A stretch of DNA of 18,068 bases from Zygophlyctis sp. KS116 (Eukaryota > Fungi > Chytridiomycota): NCBI GenBank assembly GCA_054661495.1, contig BAAFSQ010000202.1, positions 1-18,068 on the forward strand. The letters are read 5' to 3'. Within the stretch, counting starts at the first letter, position 1. Each line of letters opens with the position of its first letter. The notes beneath the pieces are model-generated. The model worked only from the letters and a program-made list of their open reading frames with translations. It had not been told where the DNA came from and did no database searches. This document shows, in pieces, positions 197 to 16,824 of this stretch. Both the position numbers and the translations under genes were made by a program.

Positions 197-1691
197 ATGG
201 AAATCTTTCAAGAACAAGATGATGATGTTGAGCAAATGGACTTTAAAATTAATGAGATTTTTGCAGATAAATATTTAAGATCTAAAAAGTCTGAAGACGC
301 TTCGAATTTAAAGAGAAAATATTTAAATTTTGATCCAGAAAGCTCTTCTTCTTCAGAGGAAGAGGATGAATTTGGAGATTTATTAACTCCAGAGCTAGAT
401 CTACAGATTGAAAAAACTCTGACTCTTTTAAAGAAAAAGGATCCTTGCATCTACAGTGAAGAAAAGAGTTTTTTTGATCAAGATATTGCCATTCCAGAAA
501 AAGTCAAGCCTGAAAAACCTTTTACTATAAAAGACTATCACAGAAGAGAATTATTAAGTGGATTAGGAGAGTCTAATTCACAATCATTACCAATAGTAGA
601 GCAGGAACAATTACTGTCTCAACAGGTTAAAAAAGCTTTTGCAGATGCTGTACAAGATGATGATCAAGATCTATTAACAGTTGTAGAACACTCAAGACAA
701 TCAGATTTGAAAAAATCAAGAAAAGAAAATATTGACGTTGAGGATGAAAATGAAGCGTTTTTAAGAGACTATCTAAATGGTAAAAAATGGTTGGATTCAG
801 ACAATATCGATCATAGAAAGTTGGAATTAATTGAAATGTCTGATGAAGAAAGAGGAATAGACGCAACTGAATCTTTTGAAGCTGATTTTAATTTTAGATT
901 TGAAGAAAAAGGTAAAGAAAAGTTCATTAAGAATAGGCGCGGAGTCATTAATTTCACATTCAAGAACTGTCGATAGCAGTTTGAGAAGAAAAGACGATAA
1001 AAGGAAGAGAATGAGAGAAAAGAAGAATTCTAGAAAAGAGGAGGAGAAAATAAAAAAAGAAGAAGAATTAAAAAGACTCAAGAATTTGAAAAAGGAAGAG
1101 ATTATGGAAAGATTAAAGAAAATTGAACAAGTTTCAGGTGCTAAAGTTGGAGATTTAGAGGAATTTTTAACTAGAGACTTTGATCCAAATGACTTTGATG
1201 ATCACATGGGAAATACTTTTGGTCAAGATTATTATAGTACAAAGGATAAAAAGTTTCCACTTGATCAGGAAGAATTATCACAAGACATATCTGAAGAATT
1301 ATCTCTAGAAAGAGAAAATATTCCTCTCTTAAATGAGAATCTCAAGAAAAAGAAGGATTCTCATTTGGATGATTTATATGCATTAGACTATGAAGACCTT
1401 ATCGGAGATCTTCCCGTTCGCTTTAAATATCGTTCAGTCAATGCAAATAACTATGGTTTAGACCCCAAAGATATTTTAATTGCAGAAGATAAAGATTTGA
1501 ATGAATTTTTATCTCTAAAGAAGCTTGCACCTTTTAGATCTGCTGAAAAACTTAAAAAAGATTCTAAATCCTGGAAGAAGCACGGGAAAACTAAACTATC
1601 AGAATTTAAATCAAACTTGAAAAAAAGAAAAAAGTCAGACTCCTCATCTCAAAAGGATTCAGATTCTAGATTAGCCTCTTACAATTTATAA
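197..1691 (+). CDS. KRI1: KRI1 40S ribosome biogenesis factor, ~489 aa; exons 197-911, 937-1691
   Basis: Removing the 25-nt intron 912-936 (GTAAAG...AATAG) joins the two ORFs into FNFRFEEKGAESLISHSRTVDSSLRRKDDKRK. Kri1-type motifs: LKKKDPCIY, KEEELKRLKNLKKEEI, LDYEDLIGDLPVRFKYRSV..NYGL...IL.AEDKDLNEFLSLKKLAPFR. Confidence 0.95.
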
Positions 1692-1782
1692 ACTAAAAAC
1701 AATTTAATAAGGAATTTTTATCTAGCCCAAATTAATTTTGAAATTTAAATTTTTTCGGACAAATTGCGCCTGAAAACTATTC

Positions 1783-2244
1783 ATGAGCATTCAAACTATT
1801 TTGACTCTTTTCAGCTTTCTTATTGTCAATGCATCCAAATCCGACTCATCAGGAATCAATGACTTAAAAGAAGTAATGAATGCTCGATACAAAGTATTGT
1901 CCGATTTATATTTTAATTCTAATTTTGATTATCCAGAGGGTCATTGGGATTTTGTGACACCAAAGAAGATACTGTATGCAATACATAATGCTATCAATGA
2001 TTGTGAGCTTCACATTAAAAAAACAAAAATTGACTTGACTGACCTGCAGAATGTCTTTGAATCTTTTCTTGATTCAGCAATGAAGAAATCAAAGAATAAT
2101 TTAATTACGAATTTAGAAATTGAAAAGGCCGTTAAACGACACAGAAATGGTTACTTTAATGATTTAAAATTGGTAGCCATGTCTCCACAGAGAATTAAGA
2201 TTATAACTGATATTCTTTCAGATCAAAATATTGATCGTTGGTAG
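1783..2244 (+). CDS. Hypothetical, probably secreted protein (153-aa ORF); may continue into the 2256/2331-2702 ORF
   Basis: Signal-peptide-like N-terminus MSIQTILTLFSFLIVNA|SKS. No family recognised. The junction to the next ORF is unresolved. Confidence 0.55.
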   Translation: MSIQTILTLFSFLIVNASKSDSSGINDLKEVMNARYKVLSDLYFNSNFDYPEGHWDFVTPKKILYAIHNAINDCELHIKKTKIDLTDLQNVFESFLDSAMKKSKNNLITNLEIEKAVKRHRNGYFNDLKLVAMSPQRIKIITDILSDQNIDRW

Positions 2245-2255
2245 AGTTCAAGAAT

Positions 2256-2702
2256 ATGCAAATGGTAGGTATTGCACCATTTTAAGAATTTTATGCAGTT
2301 GGAATAGAATCAGTCATCAAGTATGGTAAATTGAATTATGGACGTGATTTTAACAATTATGGTTTTATCGATAAAGAATTAATTTCAGTTGAATTTAAAA
2401 AGAGAAATTTGGAACAGATCGCTTATACTTTTTATTCTAGTTATGAACCATCAGAATTCTATTGCTTAAGAAAAAAAGGCTGTCCCAGAATACAAGATCG
2501 AAGAGAGGAATTGTTTTATTATTTTGATTTGGGTGTAATGGACTATAGAAACGTTGCTGAAGCAGTGTTGCTACGCGAAGATAATGCACGATTCACTGGA
2601 AATTTAGATCCAGTTGTAAATTTTAATCGATCGCTCACCACTTATTATCTAACCAAGAAAGATCATTATTGGCCAATACTGGAAAATGTGTATGGTGTCT
2701 GA
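2256..2702 (+). CDS. Hypothetical protein or 3' part of the preceding gene; possible model ATG 2256 with 30-nt intron 2269-2298
   Basis: The frame is open from 2286 to 2702 with protein-like composition. GTATTG...TGCAG (2269-2298) removes the in-frame TAA at 2283 and links ATG 2256 in frame. The start is uncertain. Confidence 0.4.
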
Positions 2703-2744
2703 AAAGGCACTCAAGTAAAACAAGTAGGTGATAAGAACCCTTTG

Positions 2745-3019
2745 ATGAATTCGCCCGAATCTGAAGACATTCAAGATGATAGTCCCATATTTGAGTTTCC
2801 GCCTTTAGATAAAATGGTAATTTTCAGGCTGTCATCATTTAGATCCCAACATTAGATGTTACTCCTTATTGGTCATGGAGAGGAATGCGATGTCTGTTAT
2901 TAGCACCATTTGTGATTGGTTTCTTCACAGGCCTTGGAGAAGGTATCGCTTACTTGGGTCTCGCAAAGTATTTTTCTATTTCATTTATTACTTTGGCCTT
3001 TCAAAAGCCTGTTAATTAA
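2745..3019 (+). CDS. MIM1: Small Mim1/Tom13-like mitochondrial outer-membrane insertase subunit, 82 aa; exons 2745-2816, 2843-3019
   Basis: Absent from the ORF track. The 26-nt intron 2817-2842 gives MNSPESEDIQDDSPIFEFPPLDKMIPTLDVTPYWSWRGMRCLLLAPFVIGFFTGLGEGIAYLGLAKYFSISFITLAFQKPVN. It has an acidic N-terminus and one TM segment with PFxxGxxxGxGE, resembling the Mim1 LPFxNGMMLGFGE signature. Confidence 0.7.
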
Positions 3020-3029
3020 GAAACAAACA

Positions 3030-4863
3030 TTAAGAGTTGTTGTTTGATTTATTATTCTTTAATGAAGTTTTTCCAATGTTTGAATCATCAGATGAGACGA
3101 CAGATAATCCTAATATTTTAAGATCTTGCGATTCCAGTTTTTCAGGATTAGCGGATCGTAAATTGTATCGATTGGTAGAGTATAGTTCATTGATAATTCG
3201 AGACGGTGAATGAGCTTGTGGTGCCGCTGTAGCTGGTCTGGTACTGGGCGTTTTCTAGTCTAAGCCGTAAAAAATATACCTTAAATTCAGACAGATTGGC
3301 TCGGAGTGAATTGTTTTCAAGTGACTGATTCTTTGCAGAGCTGTTTACAAGATTTTTTCTAGGCTGTAATGGAATCATCATCTGACTCAAGTTAATCAAT
3401 AAACTGGAATCAGTAGATTGAGATGTTGTTGATATAGATTGATCAAATTGAGTGGTTACTGTTGCTGATGATATTCTGGATTTAATATCGTTTTGAATGA
3501 TTTGATCAACGTCCATCTTGTCATTAGAATAGATTTTCCTTCCATCTTCATCTGCTCTTGTTGCAGATGATGTATTCCGATTTTTGCTGGCCAAATTGAA
3601 AAACGGTCCAAATGGAATCCCAAAACGAGTGCTTGTATAATAAGTTGGCGGAGATATGCATGAGACTCCAGGAGGAAGACTTGAAGGCGTATACAATTTC
3701 CAAAACTTGGTTTGCATACTTGATATTTAAATGGAAATGCAATTACCTTTGCAAATAATTTTGTTGCGGGCCCACCACTGATCCGGGCCTTACAACTCTT
3801 AGGAAAGATATGACTTCACATGCTGTTAATTTATAATGTTTCATCAAATAAGCAGATATAAGAGTTCCAGTACGTCCAAGCCCTGCTTTGCAGTGAATAG
3901 CAATGGGGCCTTTTTTTCAGAATTAAAAATTACCTGGTCTTGTTTCACAGATTTCTAAAAATTTAAGCAAAATTCCTTCAGGAGGAGTTGTACCATCTGG
4001 GAAATAAAGATCAATATGTTCGATTCCTTCTTCAATAAATTTGTTTCTATCATATAGCTTATTATTGAGTCTAATGATTGTTTTAATTTTTCGTTCTTTG
4101 CACCACTTTATAAGCTCGGGAATACGGTACACAGAATACAAACTAGGAATTGCAGAAGGTTGAGGTCGAAAATTGTATGGATAGTCTTCTTTTGGATTTG
4201 CTAATGCTACAAATTTGTTTGTAATCCAATTCAAATCTCCATTTTCTACTCTTTCATAAAATTCGTAATCTTCCAAATCAAAATTTTCCAAATCTAGGAG
4301 ACCCAATGTAAGAGCTTTATATAGCCCCTTTACTGCATCAAGTACCGTAATATGATATGTAGCTGGACCATATCCTGCATCTCTATAAGACACAAATGCC
4401 GGATTAATTCCTATAAATGGTTCATAAGCTTCATCAGGATTTTTCTTTTGTACCAACATCTAAGGTTACTAATAAGAATATACCATGTAACAAGTAATTA
4501 AAAATGCTGCATTAGCTCTTTTATCAGGTTCTAATCCTGAATAAAGTACAATTTTCTTTGCTGAAGTCATTGGATTCTAAAATCATGAATCGGAAAATTC
4601 ATTACCTGAAACTTTTCTTGTAATATTTGACAGAATCTAAAAACTTGAGACAAATTATTTGGACCAAAATCAGCATAAAAATTGACATAAATCAAAATCT
4701 GATCGATAGAGAAAAAATGTAGATCTTGAAATTGTGGCGGATGAAATGGTACCGACGTAAAATACAAACGATCTGGTATGATTTCTTTAGCATTTTGAAG
4801 CAATCCATTTCCATTTGTAGGCGAATTATAATTCGGAATAGCTACCTGAGAAAAATATGGCAT
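3030..4863 (-). CDS. CDC14: Cdc14 dual-specificity phosphatase, ~567 aa (alternative upstream ATG at 4938); introns 4577-4605, 4460-4483, 3910-3933, 3719-3746, 3255-3279
   Basis: The spliced product contains [54 protein letters not shown], the catalytic [10 protein letters not shown] and [10 protein letters not shown]. Introns are 29, 24, 24, 28 and 25 nt. Confidence 0.96.
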
Positions 4864-5075
4864 GAATTTAGAGATGAGTTCGAAAATGATTGTTCTTTTG
4901 GTAATGACGTCGGGCCATTGAGAATTTACAGACGTCATCTAATGCAAGATCAGCGCAAATATACGCAATCTTCCATTCTTGGATTACATTGTAATATGTT
5001 TAATGTAAAAAGCAAATGTATCATGGAAATCAATCAGAGACGTATCACTTTAAAAGACATTTTTCGACCGCTGGA

Positions 5076-5141
5076 AGAGATCTAGAGAGTCGATTGTTGG
5101 AGTGGTGAGAGATCTAGAGAGGTAGACCGATGGCAGAGATC
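5076..5141 (+). repeat. 14-nt direct repeat AGAGATCTAGAGAG x2 (5076-5089, 5108-5121) plus partial AGAGATC (5135-5141)
   Basis: Read directly from the sequence. It lies in the CDC14/ACB1 divergent intergenic region. Confidence 0.85.
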
Positions 5142-5167
5142 AGGGCAAAAGACCCTTTGAAAGTAAA

Positions 5168-5462
5168 ATGACAGATGCAGAATCTACAGGGAATGCAGCA
5201 TTCATACAGGCAGCTAATGATGCTAAAAGCCTCCCATCAAAGCCATCAGACACAGATCTATTAACTCTTTATGGTCTGTTTAAGCAGGGGGTTATTGGAG
5301 ACAATATGACAGACAAGGTAAGTTTAGTAAATTTAATTCCAGCCTGGTATGCTAGATTTCAAAGGAAAAGCAAAGTGGGAAGCATGGACCAAGAACAAGG
5401 GAATGTCAATGACTGATGCGCAGAAAAAGTATGTAGAGTTTGTAGAAACTCTAAAAAAATAA
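5168..5462 (+). CDS. ACB1: Acyl-CoA-binding protein (ACBP), 89 aa; intron 5318-5342
   Basis: Removing the 25-nt intron gives [18 protein letters not shown]|[36 protein letters not shown], the canonical ACBP signature. Confidence 0.96.
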
Positions 5463-5481
5463 TGATCTGATTTACAGCCAT

Positions 5482-5976
5482 TTAATTGAATTTCTTTGCA
5501 ACATGTTTAGCAAATTCCCCTTGTAAATGTCCTTTTCTAAAACATTCAGAACAATATCCATCATTTTCACAACCAGGACAAAATACTTGAGCATCCTCAT
5601 TACATATACCTAATTTTAATTACAATAAATTACAACACCATCCATCAGTTGGATCATTCTCTTGAAAATCAGATATATTTAATGGTTTTGGTGGCGGTCC
5701 CAAATCTGTAGTATTACTATATTTGGACTCAAAATTCAATTCATCCTGTACTTGAGCTAATAATTGAGCTGCTTCTTGACTGATTGGTGACTCTAAAGAA
5801 TCTATTTTTGGGGAAGTAAGGACCATTGTCTAATAATATTTAAATCATAATCCTACAGTATAATCAACAAATGATTGTTTTTTAACAGCAATTATTTCAT
5901 CTAAATCAATATCTTGTAATAGATTTTGAGATTTTAACAAGTCTTGAATTTCATCATCAATTTCCAAAGATTTCAT
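5482..5976 (-). CDS. ZFYVE19/ANCHR-like C-terminal B-box zinc-finger protein without a FYVE domain, ~147 aa; introns 5830-5856, 5610-5633
   Basis: The spliced C-terminus [30 protein letters not shown]...AKH matches the ZFYVE19-type WCxICNEDAxxxCxGCxxDxYCxxCF pattern, preceded by the helical AQLLAQVQDELNFE. The start ATG is inferred. Confidence 0.75.
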
Positions 5977-5986
5977 TAAAACGTCA

Positions 5987-6490
5987 TCAAGATTTTGAAT
6001 GTCTGTATGAATGATTTTTATCAATTTTAGAGCTCTGATAGTCAACTTCAATAGTTTCACTCCAATCTCTTTTAAATATTTCATCACCAGTATTAAAATG
6101 CCCTGCTGATGATTCTGTAAATTTAATCAGACTCATATTAGGAGCATAAGCAAAAGGCATTTGATCACTAATTGTAAAAACCAAAACTTACTGATTAAAT
6201 CTTTCAAAGAATCCACCGCCATCAATTCTAACTCTTAAACTTCCCTTTGTCAAGTAAGTAGAACAAGATCTAATCCGCAACATATCACCTGGCATTAAAT
6301 CTACAGCAGATTTTCCTAATAAATGTAAAACAATAGAAGCGGAAAAATCAGCAATCCAAAACAAATACATTGGAGTTTTTTGTTTTTCTCCACCGACATC
6401 TTTCTTATCAAGAATAATCACATCAATATTTACACCGTTCCAGTTTGGACAAAGATCAATGATTTTTTTGATTTTATCTCCGGCGCTCAT
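5987..6490 (-). CDS. SOSS-B/NABP (hSSB1-like) single OB-fold ssDNA-binding protein, ~159 aa; intron 6168-6191
   Basis: I.DL.P....VNI.VIILD, ..IADFSASI...L......L.PGD.LRI......L.KG.L and the post-intron F...PNMS resemble the SOSS-B1/OBFC2 family. The intron is 24 nt, GTAAGT...TTAG. Confidence 0.8.
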
Positions 6491-6646
6491 TGAGATTATT
6501 AATTTTACTTTCTGATCGGTAGACCTATGGTTGCCGCTCCCGTCCACTAGGTTCGACCAGACATACTAAAGGCCTAGCGGTCCCATGGTGAAATCGCTGG
6601 TTAGGACTGACTTGACTTAATCGTCATTAAACATTGAATTCTTCAA

Positions 6647-8158
6647 ATGGACATCATGCGCTCAGAATCTTTTTGGTCTCGTTCGTCTCAAGTCACAGAA
6701 ACAGGTCTCTTGGTAAAAAGAATAGATCCAAAAACATCAAGGAAATGTATAAATCAATATCAATTTTTGAAAGAATTGGGAAGAGGAGCTCATGGAAAAG
6801 TAAAATTGGCTGTAGATATGACGGATGAGTCGTTTTGGGCAATAAAAATAATTCCTAGAAAAGCTAAAAAGAAACTCACTGCATTCAATGCATCAATGCA
6901 AAATCATTTAGATCAAATTAAAAGAGAAATTGCAATCATGAAAAAGGTTTATCATCCGGCAATCGTAAAAGTTCGTGAAGTTATTGATTCTCCGATTTCT
7001 GATAAAATATTTTTAGTTTTGGAATATTTAAGTGGAGGAGAAATTTCTTGGGATGGTTGTCCACTTTCACAGGTAGATTGTCTCTATACTTTTAGGAAAT
7101 TGGTTCAAGGTGTACATTATTGTAATATTTACAAATTCTAAATCTAGTACATTCTCAAGGAATAATACATCGAGATATTAAGCCAGCTAATTTATTAAAA
7201 AATTCAGAAAATCAAATTAAAATTTCAGATTTTAGTGTAAGTCTGGTATATGATCCAAATGATTCTTTTTCTCAAGTTGAAATAGCAAAAGCTGCAGGCT
7301 CTCCGGCTTTTCTAGCTCCTGAAATTTGTGGGTTTTCAGAGTCTGAATTAGAGTCTGAACAAGTTTCTATAGACCCCTTTGCAATTGATGTTTGGGCTAT
7401 GGGTGTCACGCTGTACTGTTTGGTTTTTGGGATCTTGCCATTTAATGGAGAAAATGAGTTTGAAGTTTATCATGCAATAAATAATAAGTCGTAAGTATTT
7501 TTAAATAATCATATAGGCTGGTTTTTCCTTTGAAACAGTTGATTGACAATAATCTGAAAGATTTATTTCTTAAAATGTTGGAAAAGGTATGAAATTCAGT
7601 TTTAAAGTTAGAATCCTAAAAAAAGGATTAGCATACAAGAAATAAAATCTCATCCATACGTAACACATGGAATGAATGAAGCAGAAATTGATTCATGGAT
7701 TAATGATGCTTGTGATATCATTAAAGTTACGGATGACGATGTAAAAAATGCAATTAGTTTCTCTGGATTTCTTAAAAAAGGGTTCAAAATAATCAAAAAT
7801 AATTTTTTTAAATCAAAAAGGTCTGCTAGTATGCCTTCCATACGTAAGAATTTAATTCATTCTTATTTTAGATAATCTGTCTTTGCGCTCTCCTACTTTT
7901 TATGATAAATCTTTACATTCTACTCCTTCAATCCCAATCATGATGCCATATTTACCTGAACCGTGTGAGGCTCTGGCTGATAATCTACGAAAATATAAAA
8001 AATCCGGATCTGGATTGATTTTAGATAATCAATCAGAAGTTACAGATTTAATGCCGGATCAATCTTGGGTCTCCTGGGATAATTGCTATTCAGGAGGGCA
8101 TCAATCACACGAAGAATCCCAAAGTGATGAAGAAAATTATGAAGGACTTACAATCTAG
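6647..8158 (+). CDS. CAMKK / Sak1-Tos3-Ssp1-family Ser/Thr kinase (putative AMPK/Snf1-activating kinase), ~468 aa; introns 7122-7147, 7491-7516, 7587-7611, 7844-7871
   Basis: Motifs INQY...ELGRGAHGKVKLA, AIKI, REIAIMKKV.HP.IVK..EVID, HRDIKPANLL, ISDFSVS, AGSPAFLAPE, DVWAMGVTLYCLVFG.LPF, KMLEK|NPKKRI. Introns are 26, 26, 25 and 28 nt. Confidence 0.9.
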
Positions 8159-11100
8159 ATAATCTGGAAACTCTGACTCGGGCTAATTTGATTGAATTTG
8201 GTCCAGATTGCGGGAATAGGATCGCCTTTGTTTTCACTGCTATTTGGCTTTGCTGATAATCCAACTCTTTTCCAGATAATACTAAAGTAACGTGCGAAGA
8301 CTGCGGTCGATCTAGAGATAGACCTATGCTCGGTTTTGGTACATTTCCCAGCCATTGTAAGATATGATCGTAATTATTTTTCCGATTTCTTGTAATTGTT
8401 TGTAAGTATAGTTTCTGTAATTTAAAATATAAAACCCTTACATCTAAAATTGAAACATATCTTTCAGGCTGATTTATAGGTTTTATTAAGTTCAAATCTT
8501 CCATCAGTTTAGTCAGCTGACTTTTTGAATTTATCCCCTTATTTTGAAGAAAAATCATTGCAGAATGCCTTCAATTAAAAATCAGAAAGCTTACCGGACC
8601 ATATTATTACTGTCGGCAAGTCTCGGGATTATAGCGGCTAAAATTTGATTATTAAATACATCACAGGAAATCAAAGAATTCAATACCGCTAGTCTGACTT
8701 GAGAATTTTCATTTTCCAATAGATCCAACTGAGGAATAAATATGGCTGGAATAGGATCAACAAGATCATCCTTAAATGTGTGATATACGTCTGATAATGC
8801 TTTGATACCTTCAGTATTATAGCAAGATTATCATACCTTCCAATTTAACCCATGCATCGCCCGTTATGATGGTGTCAATTATTACTTTTATGAGATTTTC
8901 CAGAGTGGTTGGAAGATGACTCTTAGAATTAAATGCTGTAAAACGTTACCGGTATGCCTGGAAACCAAGACTTGTCAAACATGGAATTTAAATCAGAATC
9001 ATTGCGGTTCCGATTAAATAAAGTCCAAGATTCACGCCTTGATGCTTTATAATTCATTGGCGGCAACATTCTATGAATATCTGCTTTAATTTCATCAGCG
9101 TCTGAAATTTCAAAATTATCATCAGTTTCATCAGATTTTGTTTTCAATGGTGATGTAGAAAATTTACCGTCGGGTGATTGTCGCTTTGTTAGCACAAATG
9201 CAGAAGGCTTTTTGTAGACAGGAAGCTTGAATTTAGCTTGAATCCCTTTAGAAAAATCTTTCTTAGATTTTACTTCACTATTGAGATTGATTTTTTTATC
9301 TTCATTTTCATGCTGTAGGAATAATTTGGCCATCTTGGCCTTTTCTTCCAAGGTCAGGTATCTTTTAACAGGTGCACTCGATTCCATGACAAATGGACCA
9401 GTAGATTCAAAATTGTCATTTTCCTCGTGTCTTATTTCTTGGACTATTTGGGGTATAGTTTCATAAACTAGTTCAGGTACTTTTTCTTCCTTTTCATCTG
9501 CTTTTTGAATAGAATTGGTAGAATTTTTTAATGGAAACTTTTCTTCATTTGAATCGATTTCTGAATTATTGACACTGCGTAAACCTTTAGCCTTTTTTTG
9601 TTTGGGTTTCTTGTCTTTAATGGGGATTTTGGATTTCATAATTTCAACAGGGTCGGATTGAAAGGTTATTTCCTCATTTGTATGCTCCTCTGCACTTACT
9701 TCTGTATCTTGCTCATGAGCTATTTGAATTTCACTATCTTCATTATCTTCGTTTCCCACTGAAACATTCCCTCGCTTAATTTTCTGTTTTTTGGATTTTT
9801 TGGATTTTTTCGCCTTTGATGGCTTCCTTCCTTTGTGTAGTTTTGATAGTGTTCTTTTCTTCGACGAATTATCAGAAGATTCGTCACTATAATTTAATAA
9901 AAATTCAGGGATCTTTGCAAGTGATGTTCTTTTCGGAGACTTCGAGGCTGGGACTGGAGCGCTTTTCGATTTTCTTCTTTGATTTCCTAAGTTGAAAATA
10001 TTTTGGGATTCAACATCTCGAAGATCACCCGTTATGACCGAATTAGGGAGTGCTTTTGACTTTCTACGAGTTCCAGCAGTTTTAGCCTTCTTCACTGGAA
10101 TAGATGCATTGTTTTGCTCCATTTCTTCTAAAGTCTTCGTAAAATTTAATAATGAACTTCGCTGCTTTGCTAGTTTCGATAAAAACTCGGCTCCGGCTTC
10201 TTTAAGTAATATCTTTGGCTTATATCCTGCATGACTTGACCTATCAAATGTGGGAAGATTTTCTAGCTTAAATTCTTCCATCACCTGCTCCTGGGTGGTC
10301 ATATAAGTTTCTGTAGGTTTTGCATTCGTTTGCAGATTTCTTCCTCCAGTTTGCAGTTTAGAATGCGTTTTATCATTAGAGCTAGTTATGATAGATCCAT
10401 CAATCAGCAAACTCTCTATAGAATGAATATTTTGGGTTAATGATATTTTTGAACTTGTACTTGAATCTTCTTGATCTATTTCATAGCTTTCAATTAATAG
10501 CTTTCTGGTTTGATCACAATGGGAGATACTTTTACGATATATATGCCAAAAGTCTACTGTTTCATCAAAATTTGCTGGTACTTCTTTCTCATCATCTTTT
10601 ATATGATTATAAGCGAGCAGCCTCAAGAGAATTGAATCTGGGAGATAATCTTGGATTCGAACAACGGCAATTTGATCTATAAGCCCCACCAATAAATCAC
10701 CCTTTTCATTTGCAAAACACACAGAATAAATTGGCGATCCGAAATTCATTTCTCTAATCAAACTATTGTCAGCCCCATCCCATATTTTTACAGTCCTTTC
10801 AGTTCCACATGTTGCAAAAATATTTAACTTTTCCAGACATGAGATTGATGTCAGGTCTTGATGATCATCGCCTTTTGATCTTTTTTCAATTTTTGTCAAT
10901 CCTGTACTATAGCTAAGCATGTTTATCTCTGAGCTTTCAGAAACAAATGCTACCACTTGATGTATAGAATCAATAGCTATTTGATCAAAAAAGGCGACAG
11001 GTGACTCGAATGAACAGATCAGATTGATTGACTTTAAAGGTTTGAGAAGATTGCAATCACCAATTCCATCCAAGTCTCTAAATTGCACTTTCCAAATTTT

Positions 11101-12877
11101 GAGAATATTGTCTATTAATTAACTTAAAAAAGCTTCACCACTTGATATCGAGAAAAGATTTGATCCATTATCACAATATTTCAAGTTTATTATTGCCGCA
11201 TTGTGTCCCTGTATACAAAAGGAATATCTAATGGATGGCGCTTTTTCAACCGTAACAATCTGACCTGCATCGGTCCCACCAAATAAAACAAATAGTTGTT
11301 CTGATTCATATCCTCGAATCGAAGCCTCTTCAATTACAGAAAGCTTTTCCTTCGTTTCTGGATGTATTTCACATATTACAGTTCCGGGATTAGTGGAAGT
11401 ACCAATTACGATAATCGAACCATCGTTTAAAAGTGCAAAAAGTTGTTCACCAATACTATCATAAACAACTTTTTTCAAAGAATTATTAGAGATAGGAGGA
11501 AAAGCGAGACACAAAACCGAGCCTGAAACTGGGCAAATCAGCCTGATAGAAAAATCCTGCGTGACTGCCAATATGCGGCCACCTTTTGATTTGCTGTACC
11601 GTTTCATATATATTACAGGCATCTTCAAAAAAGAAAAAGTCCAGTAGTAGTGATTTAAATCCCAAATACTGAGTTTTGTCGTGGAAAACGTAGCAAAATG
11701 TTCCCCCTTAAGCCATTTGACCCCCATACATTCGGAACCCGTCTCCAAAATGTAATTACAAAGACCTGTATCTAAATTCCACTGTCGGATAGAACCATCA
11801 AAAGAACTTGAAAGCAAAAATGGAGATAATTTAGAAGTTGCTGAGACTGATATAGAAAAAGGATTAAGAAGAAGTCCTGTAATCCCTTGAAAGTGCCCAT
11901 TAAGATCAAATATAAGATTCTTTTTTTGGTTCCATATTTTCACTTAAATAAAATAACTAAAAGTTTACAATCGCCATCACGAGATCCAGTGATTAAATAT
12001 TGATTTTCTTCATCAAATACCATTGCAGTTATAGTACCATCATGTATTTGTTTCATTGTATCAATTTTTTCACCATTCTTATAATCATAGAGCTAATATT
12101 ATCTAAATAATTTTTACAGAGATATTATTATCATACGCTACATAGATCTGTCCACATTTAATGTATACTGAAATTGTGACCCAGTCATCAACATTGAGAT
12201 CAGAGATACATAATCGAGGTGAATCAAGAACAAAAGTATTTTTTTGCTGAATAAAACTCCAAATCTGAATGTTACCGACTCCAGAGACAACAATTTCTTC
12301 TGTTTCTTCAATAAAATTCAGACTGAAAGTTAATTTAGTTAAATTACTTTAAAACTGGCTTGATACTGGACTTAACTCCAGTCAAAGTAAAATCGCTTGT
12401 TAATGTTTTCAGTTCCAAGAGCGATGTTGAGATTATGATGACTCTCCATTTAGGTGCATATTCCCATTGGCCGATTCCCGTTACTACGCTGCCCTTTTCA
12501 TCATTTCGAGGCTTCTTAATGGGAAGTTTGAGAATATGATTTGATTCTGACCACAAATGAACATAATTGGCATCCATGGCTGCAAACTGATTTCTCATTC
12601 CCGACATACACAACATCGATGTAAAGTTAGAATTCACAGAGGGATGATCAATTGAATCCATTAATTGAAACCCATGTGGTATACTCAATTGGTAAGAAGT
12701 TGGACGTTCTTCATCGCTCTCATCCTCGCCGGCTAATGATGATCTTCGGACCTTTTTAACCCCTGATTTTATGCTAGAAGACAACATGTATTCAATCTTC
12801 TTTTTAACTGATGCCCATGGCTGTATAAGTGCTTCTGATGAGACAATGAGAGAGTTTTCAATGTATTGCTCGTCCAT
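8148..12877 (-). CDS. Large WD40-repeat protein with a Lys/Ser/Glu-rich linker and HEAT-like C-terminus (WDR97/WDR87-like), ~1500 aa; introns 12323-12347, 12093-12117, 11943-11968, 11112-11138, 8922-8949, 8809-8836, 8569-8594
   Basis: Multiple WD motifs (LITGSRDGDLKIW, LLSSSFDGSIRQW, ATCGTERTVKIWD...LIREMNF....SVCFANEKGDLLVG). Seven 25-28 nt introns restore one continuous frame. The WDR97/87 assignment is from recalled architecture only. Confidence 0.8.
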
Positions 12878-12889
12878 GACCAAAGTACG

Positions 12890-15800
12890 TCATTCGTTAC
12901 AAATTACATCAAACAATCCTGTACGCAAGCTATCGAGTGCAGGATGGCGATCATATGCTTTAATAGCTTCTCTTATCGCTTCTTCGGCTTCATAATTCCG
13001 GTCTTGAAGGCTGAGCACATTTGCAAGTTTTCGTCTCGCATCCGCTCGATAATTTTCATACAGTGGATTTGATCTTGACGGGATCTCTTCATTGCAAGCT
13101 CTTCTTAGCCAAATTTCTGCAAGATCTAAGCGTGTAAACTCTGAAAGGAATAATGAACCAATTAATATTTGTGATGCAATGTGGCCCTTACACACAAAGT
13201 TTGAAAGCAGAAGTTCATCCAATAAATTTCGGATAACTGCATTATTAGAAGCGGAATTCTGTTCCGGTTTAGATTGATTCTTGATTCTCTCCATTATAGA
13301 CAAGTTTTCTAGTCCATCCAATAACTCATGATTCGATTTAAACTGTGTCTGACTCTCCTCCAAGTTGGTTAAACATCGCTATCGCTTTACTTTTCATCAA
13401 GATTACCTCATATATTATATCAGCTACAAAGTTGCGTATTTTAGGAGAATATGAATTCCATACTGAAACTTGGTCATTTGTGGATGTTAACGAATCACCA
13501 CTTATTTCTGCAAGAGCTGAAAATATTTTACTGACGGGCTTTTCCAGAAGAGGCTGTAAAGATTTTTCTGCTTCAATTAGAGCTTTTTTGGATGCGTCAT
13601 ATTGTTTAAGTTTACGATACATGGAAGATGTTTTTATCCATAAATATCCTTGCATCAAGCATGCCACTGTAGAATACCCCTCCAGGCGAATTGAAGAGAC
13701 TGACGAAGTAGAGAAATTACGTACCATGGGTGATCTATTATATAAGGGTGAAGCTATATTTTAGATAAACTTGTTTACATATTGGAGTAGTAGGCTGGCT
13801 TGTATTTTTGGTCGGGTCAGGACTGCCAAACAGTTTCTTTTGTAATGCAAAAATAGAATAAAGTGTCTCCATTGCATCTCTCGCTCCGTACAAGCAAGTT
13901 TCGATATCTAATTTAGTCATATGCAAACTGTTTTAAGAAAAATAAACAATTACTCTAAAAAATTCAGTTTGCTCTGCATCGAATCAGAAAACTTTATGTC
14001 TCTCCCACATTCTTTAATTCCCATTCCACATACATTTTTTGCTTGTTCAAAATCCTCCCGTAAAAAGAGCATAATTGCCAATAAGTTCCAAGCTGAGGGA
14101 TTCGAAGAATTCAGCTTCAGAGAAGCATTTACATAGGGTATAGCTTCCAAAAGCTTAAAATTAGTTTGAATATATATACATCATTCTCGTACTTGGCAAT
14201 ATTTAGAGCCCTCTGATAACCAATAAGCCAATTATACTTTAGATCAATTTTTGCATGCAAAGGAAAGATAATTTCTTTCAAATCATTTATATCACCTATC
14301 ATCAATCTATGAAACGTACCATTCAAAACCGATTCTTCACATATTGCGTATAAGTATTGCACAATAACACTAAAAGACTTTGTATTTCTAGATAATTCAT
14401 CAAAATGGTTTCGAAGTATCATAATTATGCGCTGTATAAAGTGCGGGGAATAAAGGTTCTATAATTTGAGAATATGAAACATACATCCTCTTGTGTATAT
14501 TGAAGGAGACATTGAAGCCTTTCTCCTGTTATTAAAACAGATAAAACGTCCTCCAAACTTTCACCGGTCGCTTCAAAAGAATTTTTTGAAATATCACACA
14601 AATCTGTAAAATTGAGAGAAATTTCAGAGTAAGATCTAAACCAGCGTGACTCATAAAGTTGTATAATCTTTTGCGCCTCCTTTTAATCAGTTTGAAACTT
14701 TTACCAACTTATCAGAATCAGCAATACTCATATCTGTTAATGTGAACATTGATACAAAGGTAAATGACAAGTATCGAAGAACTCTCAGAGATAAAAAAAC
14801 ATGCTGACTTCCTTTATAAAGCGCCTAAAAATCAATCAATATTAATCAAATATTACCTCTATCAAATCCACGTGTCTTTGTATAGAATCCGACAAATACT
14901 CTGCTCCATTCTTAAAACTAAAAAGACAATAAAGCCAATCAAAAGATTTTAACAACTTTTGTGAACGATCCTTATCTACATCCATACTACCAATACCTTT
15001 TGAAATATCTACAAAATTCCTTAAAATACGTTGATATTGAAGCAAGTATACTACTACACAATCCTTTAGAGTAAATGGCAAAGTCCTTTGTAAACAAGGA
15101 ATTAAATAGAGTCCAGGAATATCCATTATAGGAAGCAATACCAATTCTAAATAAGAATGTAATAAATAAAGCCTTTTTTCAGCAAAAACCTTCAAATCCA
15201 AATTATAAACAAAATTTAAATACGCTTCATGACTAGCAAGTATTTGATCATTATCTCTAAAACCTTTTAAAATCTAAAATTACCCTTGTGTTATGCTTAA
15301 AAACGCCCAATGAAACAAAAAACATTCACCCCACTTTTGTATTTCATTACTGATCCTACCAATAGGAATATTATTACTTAAAATATTAATATTTGAAGAA
15401 TATAATTGAAAATGCTTTGCAGCCTCGCTTCTCTTTCCCATTGCGTCTAATGTCCAACCTAAATCTTCAAACGATCACAAACCTTACCCTGCAATACCCT
15501 AAACATAAGCATTAAATGCTGAGGACAATTTTCCGTGACTATTAGCTTACTACTAGATAATAGATTATTAGCCAAAGCGTAATTTCTCTGCATCCATGCA
15601 ATTTGAGCTTTATTAAGAACAGCTTGCTAAAATCAATATAAAAAAACATACCCAAGAATTTTCTTCCATTGAACCAAAACTAGAAGATTGCCAGCTATCT
15701 AAAAGCGCAACAATTTCCTTTACATCCCAAGGAATTCCTTTTGGAGGTTCAAAAACAAAATCTACTTGAACTTGATCCCACTGTATAAATTGTACATGCC

Positions 15801-15936
15801 TTTCAAATTCTAAATTCAAATTCGCTTCAGCCACGTACAATGCCGACCAAGGATCTTTTTTATGTTTTAGAGCCTTTCTCTTCAATTCACTCCAGTCCCC
15901 TTGAACTCGAAGAATTTGCATACTAACCCTCGACAT
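12890..15936 (-). CDS. YPP1/TTC7-like TPR scaffold (PI4-kinase Stt4/PI4KA complex), ~925 aa; introns 15627-15651, 15459-15487, 15257-15283, 14825-14856, 14680-14704, 14459-14484, 14154-14179, 13928-13953, 13754-13778, 13379-13406
   Basis: Ten 25-32 nt introns give a stop-free 926-codon frame. The N-terminal RVQGDWSEL resembles the TTC7/Ypp1 R.EG.W motif. TPR-like helices include AIPYVNASLKLN....AWNLLA, LWIKTSSMY and LAEIWLRRA. The TPR call is firm; orthology is less so. Confidence 0.7.
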
Positions 15937-16053
15937 TCCACTGTTGCTCTATAACAGAGCTATATTAGGAATTTATTAGATAATAAAATCCAGTAAAACA
16001 CCTAAAACCGACTATAAATTTGTAATTCAAGCCCTAAATCCTGTAGAAAATTC

Positions 16054-16080
16054 AATCTCAAAATCTCAAAATCTCAAAAT
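16054..16080 (+). repeat. (AATCTCAA)x3 tandem repeat running into the BMT2 start codon
   Basis: aatctcaa-aatctcaa-aatctcaa-aATG, read directly. Confidence 0.85.
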
Positions 16081-16824
16081 GAAGAGGAAAATCCCGATTC
16101 CACTGCAAGCAAAAATTGAAGAAAATGAAAAAGGAAATCAAATTTCAAGTTTTCATTTGAAATTAAAGGAAAAAACAGATAATTTAAATGATTTAATTAA
16201 ATATCAAAAAACTTCTTTTAAGAATTCTATAAAGAGTTGTACAGGGAAATGGCTTATGAATATTCTAGATAAGGAAAATCAGAAGAAGAGTTTATTGGAT
16301 GTAGGAGCTCTAGATGGAAGTACTTGGGATAAATACAAAAATTATTTAATTGTAGAATCAATAGACTTGAATCCGCTATCTTCAAAAGTTAAAAAACAGG
16401 ATTTCTTTGAAAGGCCGATTGATGGAAAAACATTTGATATTGTATCGCTATCTCTGGTTGTTAATTTTGTTCAATCACCATTGAAAAGAGGAGAAATGAT
16501 GGTTAGAGCTGTCAAATTTTTAGAAACAAATGGAATACTCTACATAACACTTCCAAAGTCGTAAGATTTATTTAAACTGATCCTAGTTGTATTCAAAATT
16601 CTAGATATCTAACAGACAAAACATTTATTGACCTGTGTCTAGGTCTAGGTCTAGTGCTAATGGATTCACATTTCTCAACCAAAATTGCATTTTATGCTTT
16701 CCAACAACGGGAAAATATGGATCCAGAGAAGTTGTCCTTGTTTTTCAAGAAAATAATTGTTAATGGTGGAACTAAAAGAAACAATTTCTCTATAGTGTTT
16801 GATAAGAATAGCATATCTATTTAG
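16079..16824 (+). CDS. BMT2: 25S rRNA adenine-N1 methyltransferase Bmt2-like, ~239 aa; intron 16561-16586
   Basis: Motifs LLDVGAL, IDLNP......QDF, FDIVSLSLVVNFV.....RGEM, LP.S|C..NSRY and the terminal GG.KRNNFSIV are characteristic of Bmt2. Confidence 0.9.

Follow-up and report, generated by a model that had tools for sequence, protein, structure and literature searches.

Introns of the window and their boundaries

The window analyzed here is contig C202 at its full length of 18,068 nt, part of a eukaryotic assembly of 12.7 Mb in 1175 contigs with approximately 33% GC. Its genes, which include those for KRI1, CDC14, an acyl-CoA-binding protein, a protein kinase, a WD40 protein and BMT2, are interrupted by unusually short introns, the 3' ends of which are the subject of this work. 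A preliminary description of the window had proposed that splicing occurs at the earliest AG lying 24 nt or more from the donor, with no role for a branch box or a pyrimidine tract. The data presented below indicate that the 3' end is very probably set by branch-point geometry with two lower limits: a branch A at intron position 17 or later, and an AG ending at least 6 nt past this A.

In total, 34 GT-AG introns of 24-32 nt were identified between positions 912 and 16586. Their boundaries were fixed without any splice-site rule by comparison with related contigs, which are syntenic with the window at approximately 68-75% nucleotide identity and in which conserved exons flank diverged, length-variable introns. 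Conservation of the flanks also settled the two cases that are ambiguous in frame, 13379-13406 and 15459-15487; at the latter, a 23-nt option (15465-15487) lost to the 29-nt intron. All six introns for which skipped AGs had been described before were found, together with these AGs, at the positions listed here, and their boundaries were likewise fixed by the conserved exons of the relatives. In the list, positions are counted from the donor, negative numbers are offsets from the 3' end, and "candidate A" denotes the putative branch nucleotide.

912-936 (+), 25-nt intron of KRI1; candidate A at 930 (position 19, -7); the skipped AG at position 20 includes this A
2817-2842 (+), 26-nt intron; candidate A near 2834 (-9)
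3255-3279 (-), 25-nt intron of CDC14; candidate A near 3261 (position 19, -7); AG at position 20 skipped
3719-3746 (-), 28-nt intron of CDC14; candidate A near 3727 (-9)
3910-3933 (-), 24-nt intron of CDC14; candidate A near 3917 (position 17, -8)
4460-4483 (-), 24-nt intron of CDC14; candidate A near 4466 (-7); ortholog in relative L028 of 23 nt
4577-4605 (-), 29-nt intron of CDC14; candidate A near 4583 (-7)
5318-5342 (+), 25-nt intron of the acyl-CoA-binding protein gene; candidate A near 5336 (-7)
5610-5633 (-), 24-nt intron of a B-box-like gene; candidate A near 5616 (-7); L028 ortholog of 23 nt
5830-5856 (-), 27-nt intron; candidate A near 5840; L028 ortholog of 23 nt
6168-6191 (-), 24-nt intron of a presumed SSB1/NABP-like gene; candidate A near 6175 (position 17, -8)
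7122-7147 (+), 26-nt intron of the protein kinase gene; candidate A near 7141 (-7)
7491-7516 (+), 26-nt intron of the kinase gene; candidate A near 7508 (-9)
7587-7611 (+), 25-nt intron of the kinase gene; candidate A near 7605 (position 19, -7); skipped AG at position 21, 2 nt past this A
7844-7871 (+), 28-nt intron of the kinase gene; candidate A near 7865 (-7)
8415-8441 (-), 27-nt intron of the WD40 gene; candidate A near 8422 (-8)
8569-8594 (-), 26-nt intron of the WD40 gene; candidate A near 8575 (-7)
8809-8836 (-), 28-nt intron of the WD40 gene; candidate A near 8817 (-9)
8922-8949 (-), 28-nt intron of the WD40 gene; candidate A near 8929 (-8)
11112-11138 (-), 27-nt intron of the WD40 gene; candidate A near 11119 (-8)
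11943-11968 (-), 26-nt intron of the WD40 gene; candidate A near 11949 (-7)
12093-12117 (-), 25-nt intron of the WD40 gene; candidate A near 12099 (-7)
12323-12347 (-), 25-nt intron of the WD40 gene; candidate A near 12330 (-8); 54-55 nt in two relatives
13379-13406 (-), 28-nt intron of the gene at 12890-15921; candidate A near 13387 (position 20, -9); skipped AG at position 22, 2 nt past this A
13754-13778 (-), 25-nt intron; candidate A near 13761 (-8)
13928-13953 (-), 26-nt intron; candidate A near 13934 (-7)
14154-14179 (-), 26-nt intron; candidate A near 14161 (-8)
14459-14484 (-), 26-nt intron; candidate A near 14467 (-9)
14680-14704 (-), 25-nt intron; candidate A near 14687 (-8)
14825-14856 (-), 32-nt intron; candidate A near 14832 (position 25, -8)
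15257-15283 (-), 27-nt intron; best candidate A near 15267 (position 17, -11); skipped AG at position 20, 3 nt past this A; an AG at position 10 precedes the branch floor
15459-15487 (-), 29-nt intron; candidate A near 15467 (position 21, -9); skipped AG at position 23, 2 nt past this A and without a T15/A17 branch
15627-15651 (-), 25-nt intron; candidate A near 15633 (-7)
16561-16586 (+), 26-nt intron of BMT2; candidate A near 16580 (-7)

In every intron of the window, the acceptor is the earliest AG located at position 24 or later, as had been claimed, although for a count of 33 rather than 34; the same rule was obeyed by 57 of the 60 ortholog-anchored introns of the relatives. Because most introns of the window are only 24-28 nt long, there were no more than 47 places at which a violation could have occurred. 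The reported absence of AGs between position 24 and the site used was confirmed for the window, but it does not exceed chance (47 positions × 0.029 = 1.4 expected, P(0) = 0.26). Each of the six previously described skipped AGs ends 1-3 nt past the putative branch A.

Two of the listed introns have orthologs of unusual structure. The ortholog of 6168-6191 in L021 (L021:5126-5150) is a 25-nt intron with TG at its 3' end, in contrast to the AG of the window and L028. Its exons are in register and a branch-like TAA is present at -7. It was seen in one contig and possibly represents a non-canonical GT-TG intron, a broken allele or an error of the assembly. The long versions of 12323-12347 in L022 and L023 (54-55 nt) both carry an internal TTGATT...CGAT-CGC, perhaps a small functional element lost in the window.

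Branch motif and its positional limits

A larger intron set was obtained with a two-strand gene model that used a flat intron length prior of 12-120 nt, allowed GT-AG introns only, contained no branch model and defined the acceptor by AG only. Applied to the window and to a further 200 kb from contigs C1 and C2 of the same genome, it gave 320 introns at a posterior of at least 0.8, with a mode of 26 nt and nearly all lengths at 23-34 nt; the 308 confident calls of 20-45 nt were used for the rule tests. Calls above 40 nt were set aside, most of them resembling merged genes, and most calls below 23 nt were discounted owing to weak donors or in-frame longer options. Within the window, the calls of 19 nt at 6069-6087 and of 39 nt at 12869-12907 were false as judged by conservation or gene overlap, and so were 53-nt versions at 8389 and 14432, where the true lengths are 27 and 26 nt. 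The genome is compact, with an intron density of approximately 2 per kb.

When aligned at their 3' ends, the introns were A-rich at -9 to -7 and showed no pyrimidine tract, in agreement with the preliminary description. Donors were GTA-rich with A at +3 in 95%, and the base at -3 of the acceptor was T in 231, A in 57, C in 18 and G in 2 of the 308 introns, AAG being three times as common as CAG. The claim that no branch box is involved did not hold: an expectation-maximization (EM) search retrieved a strong Y-T-(A/T/G)-A motif with a log-likelihood (logL) of 244.5, compared with 12.5 ± 3.2 for interior shuffles and 104.8 ± 3.0 for 3'-column shuffles. The EM offset weights of the motif A were 0.00 at -5 and -6, and 0.27, 0.32 and 0.23 at -7, -8 and -9, respectively. 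We infer from this pattern that the motif A is the lariat branch nucleotide.

With 82% of the branch weight at -7 to -9, a fixed branch-to-AG ruler in the style of Yarrowia, Trichomonas or Encephalitozoon, with no donor-relative floor, might be considered sufficient. Against this, the offset is not fixed: it was squeezed to -7/-8 in introns of 23-24 nt and widened to -9 to -12 in longer ones. Moreover, 15 of the 29 skipped AGs at positions 18-22 have a well-placed branch-like motif, but before position 17, and for this reason a donor-relative floor is needed in addition. The posterior mass of the motif A relative to the donor rose from 3 at position 16 to 31 at position 17, and a length-conditional truncation fit peaked when the branch was barred before position 17 (logL 274.9; 241.2 unbarred, 249.5 at 16 and 203.1 at 18), which argues for a floor that acts on the branch and not on the AG. 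As a branch model lacking the 17 floor also gave the worst held-out prediction (see below), a fixed branch-to-AG ruler acting by itself appears highly improbable. The hard minimum distance from the donor postulated earlier is real in that a donor-relative limit exists, but this limit concerns the branch A (position 17 or later) rather than an AG at 24 nt. Combined, the branch floor of 17 and the branch-to-AG floor of 6 result in a minimum intron of 23 nt.

Choice of the acceptor AG

The 24-nt rule was violated by 12 of the 308 introns: six were 23 nt long, and six skipped an AG at position 24, 25 or 27. AGs between position 24 and the acceptor were depleted in this sample (6 seen versus 18.8 expected, p = 6e-4), though not absolutely; use of the first AG, the second element of the earlier proposal, is thus a rule that operates, but with six AGs at 24-27 passed over. 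Several of the exceptions were verified by exon-by-exon homology searches. The 23-nt intron of the eRF1 gene is residue-exact, its flanking exons ending at residue 40 and starting at residue 41 of human eRF1, and the same applies to the 23-nt intron of NTF2 (residues 31 and 32 of yeast NTF2). In a 33-nt Pmt intron, the AG at position 25 is skipped; its use would cause a frameshift, and the junction used is in register with Pmt4. Together with three 23-nt orthologs of window introns in L028, these cases demonstrate that the true floor is 23 nt and that the first AG beyond it is not always used.

Use of an AG at position 23 depended on the branch. It was used in six of six introns with T15/A17 and in none of six without (Fisher p = 0.002), with a T15/A17 background of 22/160 (14%). 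Similarly, of the AGs at 24-27, 179 of the 182 used ones had an available branch, whereas five of the six skipped ones lacked one. In held-out tests, which included the relatives, distance alone reached logL values of -12.2/-32.6, the branch without floor -54.2/-68.3, the branch with floor and -3 base -11.5/-16.0, and distance combined with the floored branch -3.0/-13.5. A hard 24-nt donor-to-AG floor followed by the first AG, with no branch box, accordingly has in its favor that it fits all 34 window introns, the 57 ortholog-anchored introns mentioned above and 296 of the 308 introns of the genome sample, and that AG use in held-out data was better predicted by distance alone than by a branch motif lacking a donor floor. 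It is contradicted by the homology-proven 23-nt introns of eRF1, NTF2 and L028, by the six skipped AGs at 24-27 including the Pmt case, by the strong branch motif with its positional cut-off, and by the use of AGs at 23, which is predicted by the branch and not by distance. Its probability is considered very low. The first AG at or beyond 24 approximates the two-floor rule at 96%.

A number of observations weigh against the two-floor rule. The combined model outperformed the floored branch on held-out data, so that some direct preference for length may remain. In raw accuracy, the simple branch rule (302/308) and the 24-nt rule (296/308) differed by 11 versus 5 discordant introns, which is not significant, and the values 17 and 6 of the former were tuned on the same data. 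At C1 40030, a single AG at position 24 was skipped despite an available branch; in addition, T-N-A is missing from the permitted offsets in a few introns. Two high-posterior calls of only 17 nt (L016:5177-5193, corresponding to C2 25177-25193 on the minus strand, and L013:2483-2499, corresponding to C1 122483-122499) have an atypical context and no good longer option; they probably represent gene boundaries or frameshift errors. In two of the three 23-nt introns of L028 (L028:4202-4224 and L028:3025-3047), the best branch A is at position 16, which suggests that the donor floor may differ by lineage and be one base lower in L028. The sample comprised 218 kb of 12.7 Mb, and a single RNA run covering part of 10601-16600 gave five short pieces with no joints and was uninformative. 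Given the small gap in accuracy and the tuned values, three lines of evidence carry the case for the two floors: the branch dependence of AG use at position 23, the truncation fit and the exceptions proven by homology.

The seemingly lower floor in L028 would also fit cut-offs that mark soft optima rather than hard steric limits; selection for efficient splicing, aided by nonsense-mediated decay, would maintain them, and shorter introns would still be processed, though less well. In line with such an explanation, Paramecium bursaria introns below 23 or above 26 nt exist and are spliced less efficiently (PMC12862383), and 15-nt introns occur in Stentor, where the branch lies at position 10 (PMC9505925). 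The approximately tenfold or greater drop within a single base (branch at 16 versus 17; -6 versus -7) is sharper than a soft optimum suggests, and we regard this alternative as improbable.

Splicing machinery and intron class

U2, Slu7, Prp18 and SF1 were present in the genome, each above the search cut-off. For U2 small nuclear RNA (snRNA), two full matches with equal scores (C11:32201-32391 and C140:2790-2980) and two partial matches at the ends of the small contig C912 (8-68 and 1453-1550) were obtained; the U2 genes carry GTAGTA (GUAGUA in the RNA), as checked by pattern only. A U2AF65-like gene on C201 gave three adjacent exon matches, each under the whole-protein cut-off. A search for U12 snRNA gave no match, in a setting where the control could not have signaled either, and the donor consensus does not resemble the RTATCCT of U12-type introns. 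The search for RED_N was blank and uninformative. With GT-AG ends and a GTA-rich donor, a U2-compatible though weak motif at -7 to -11 and factors of the major spliceosome, the introns appear to be ordinary U2-type GT-AG introns, for which excision via a lariat is predicted.

Neighboring genes and placement of the organism

The gene of the intron at 6168-6191 is one that we take to belong to the OB-fold SSB1/NABP-like family; its 3' portion runs into the beginning of the B-box-like gene (5987-6087). The gene at 12890-15921, in the tested exons of which Pfam gave no match, is presumably YPP1/TTC7-like. Genes are closely packed elsewhere, too: the 3' ends of the kinase and WD40 genes overlap by approximately 10 nt (8148-8158), and the stop of an upstream gene lies within approximately 20 nt of the WD40 start (12870-12895). 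Two copies of the 12-nt motif AGATCTAGAGAG are located at 5078-5121, in the short promoter region from which CDC14 and the acyl-CoA-binding protein gene diverge. An open reading frame at 1783-3019 has a signal-peptide-like start and is poorly conserved in relatives; it may contain a 30-nt intron at 2269-2298, a candidate outside the 34 listed and situated in an ambiguous stretch (2245-2300). At the contig end (18021-18068), approximately three head-to-tail copies of a 15-nt unit mark either an assembly end or a telomere-like repeat.

The proteins nearest to the window products were environmental sequences. Named matches to eRF1 were mostly from chytrids and other early-diverging fungi, at approximately 80% identity, and a single-gene tree placed the genome and two environmental sequences inside Chytridiomycota with moderate support (91/87) in a sample without Rozella and without an aphelid. 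Reads of a freshwater metatranscriptome were mostly 99% alike to the window. The organism is probably a chytrid-like fungus from freshwater that is as yet uncultured, the placement being tentative.

Discussion

The use of the first AG at or beyond 24 nt is a real local regularity of the window, whereas the donor-to-AG mechanism proposed to explain it is unsupported. In the mechanism favored here, which is read from intron sequences, the branch would form on a degenerate Y-T-(A/T/G)-A, the A of which cannot precede intron position 17, and U2 most likely pairs with this motif via its intact GUAGUA. The earliest AG to end 6 nt or more past the branch A would then serve as the acceptor, placing the A at -7 to approximately -11, and AGs before, overlapping or directly after the branch would be ignored. 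Both floors may be steric, with the U6/5' splice site opposing the U2/branch helix in one case and docking for the second step with Prp18/Slu7 limiting the other.

It is conceivable, though rather unlikely, that the spliceosome has been remodeled further: spacing instead of sequence would pick the branch, U2 would engage whichever acceptable T-N-A comes first, counting from exactly position 17, and docking of the AG would be possible from 6 nt beyond it despite retained Prp18 and Slu7. In that case, the donor-to-branch floor would be a lineage trait of one-base resolution, with a value of 17 in this genome and of 16 in a relative, and could be traced back to particular changes in proteins.

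Introns of 23 nt raise the question of how a spliceosome can be accommodated on them, and in most lineages with tiny introns the branch is unreadable from the sequence. Here, many introns reveal both spacing limits, 17 and 6, to the single base, and relatives that apparently differ by one base are suited for a comparative test of steric models. For annotation, the branch/floor rule offers a correct guide for this clade, the genes of which are split by prokaryotic callers in public collections. In a literature search of incomplete coverage, introns of 23-34 nt were not found described for any chytrid-like lineage.

In Encephalitozoon cuniculi, the branch motif CTAAYTT would put its A at -7, as in the introns studied here, if a three-base acceptor comes immediately after it. 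Constrained branch-AG spacing is known from E. cuniculi, Yarrowia lipolytica, Trichomonas and Giardia (PMC2483917), which share with the present introns the lack of a pyrimidine tract and a branch few bases from the AG. These four lineages have few introns, a branch consensus that is strong and, in several cases, a spacing that is nearly fixed; the genome studied here is intron-rich and uses a motif of 3-4 bases. A Yarrowia/Trichomonas-type system is therefore not at hand, the motif being degenerate, the offsets spread over -7 to -11 and the introns as frequent as approximately 2 per kb.

Intron-rich genomes in which the GT-AG introns are very small and only weakly marked by splice signals are otherwise known from Paramecium (median 24-25 nt), Stentor (15-16 nt), dicyemids, myxobolids (22-27 nt) and Rozella allomycis (approximately 30 nt in S23) (PMC12862383, PMC9505925, PMC13644364, PMC6349667). 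Paramecium, the Bigelowiella nucleomorph and dicyemids are reported to lack a branch signature (PMC2483917), whereas it is clear here, and Stentor, unlike the present case, has a single fixed geometry (A at position 10, -6).

Contrary to the assumption of an undescribed mechanism, both floors have been described in other systems (PMC6692369, PMC10711555). The human minimum distance between 5' splice site and branch is approximately 50 nt and has been ascribed to steric hindrance; the same paper cites a comparable donor-to-branch requirement for yeast MATa1 (PMC6692369). The likeness lies in a donor-relative floor on the branch site, ascribed to steric limits between small nuclear ribonucleoproteins, with the human value of approximately 50 nt facing 17 here, the latter being the position of a branch A deduced from sequence. 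In Saccharomyces cerevisiae, the minimum from branch to 3' splice site is 10 nt, or 7 nt without Prp18, which serves as a molecular ruler (PMC10711555). There, too, AGs too near the branch are unused, and Prp18 and Slu7 are present in both systems; in the same convention, the natural minimum of 10 nt compares with 6 nt in a genome that has retained Prp18. The introns described here thus represent a compressed variant of known spliceosome geometry and not a new mechanism.

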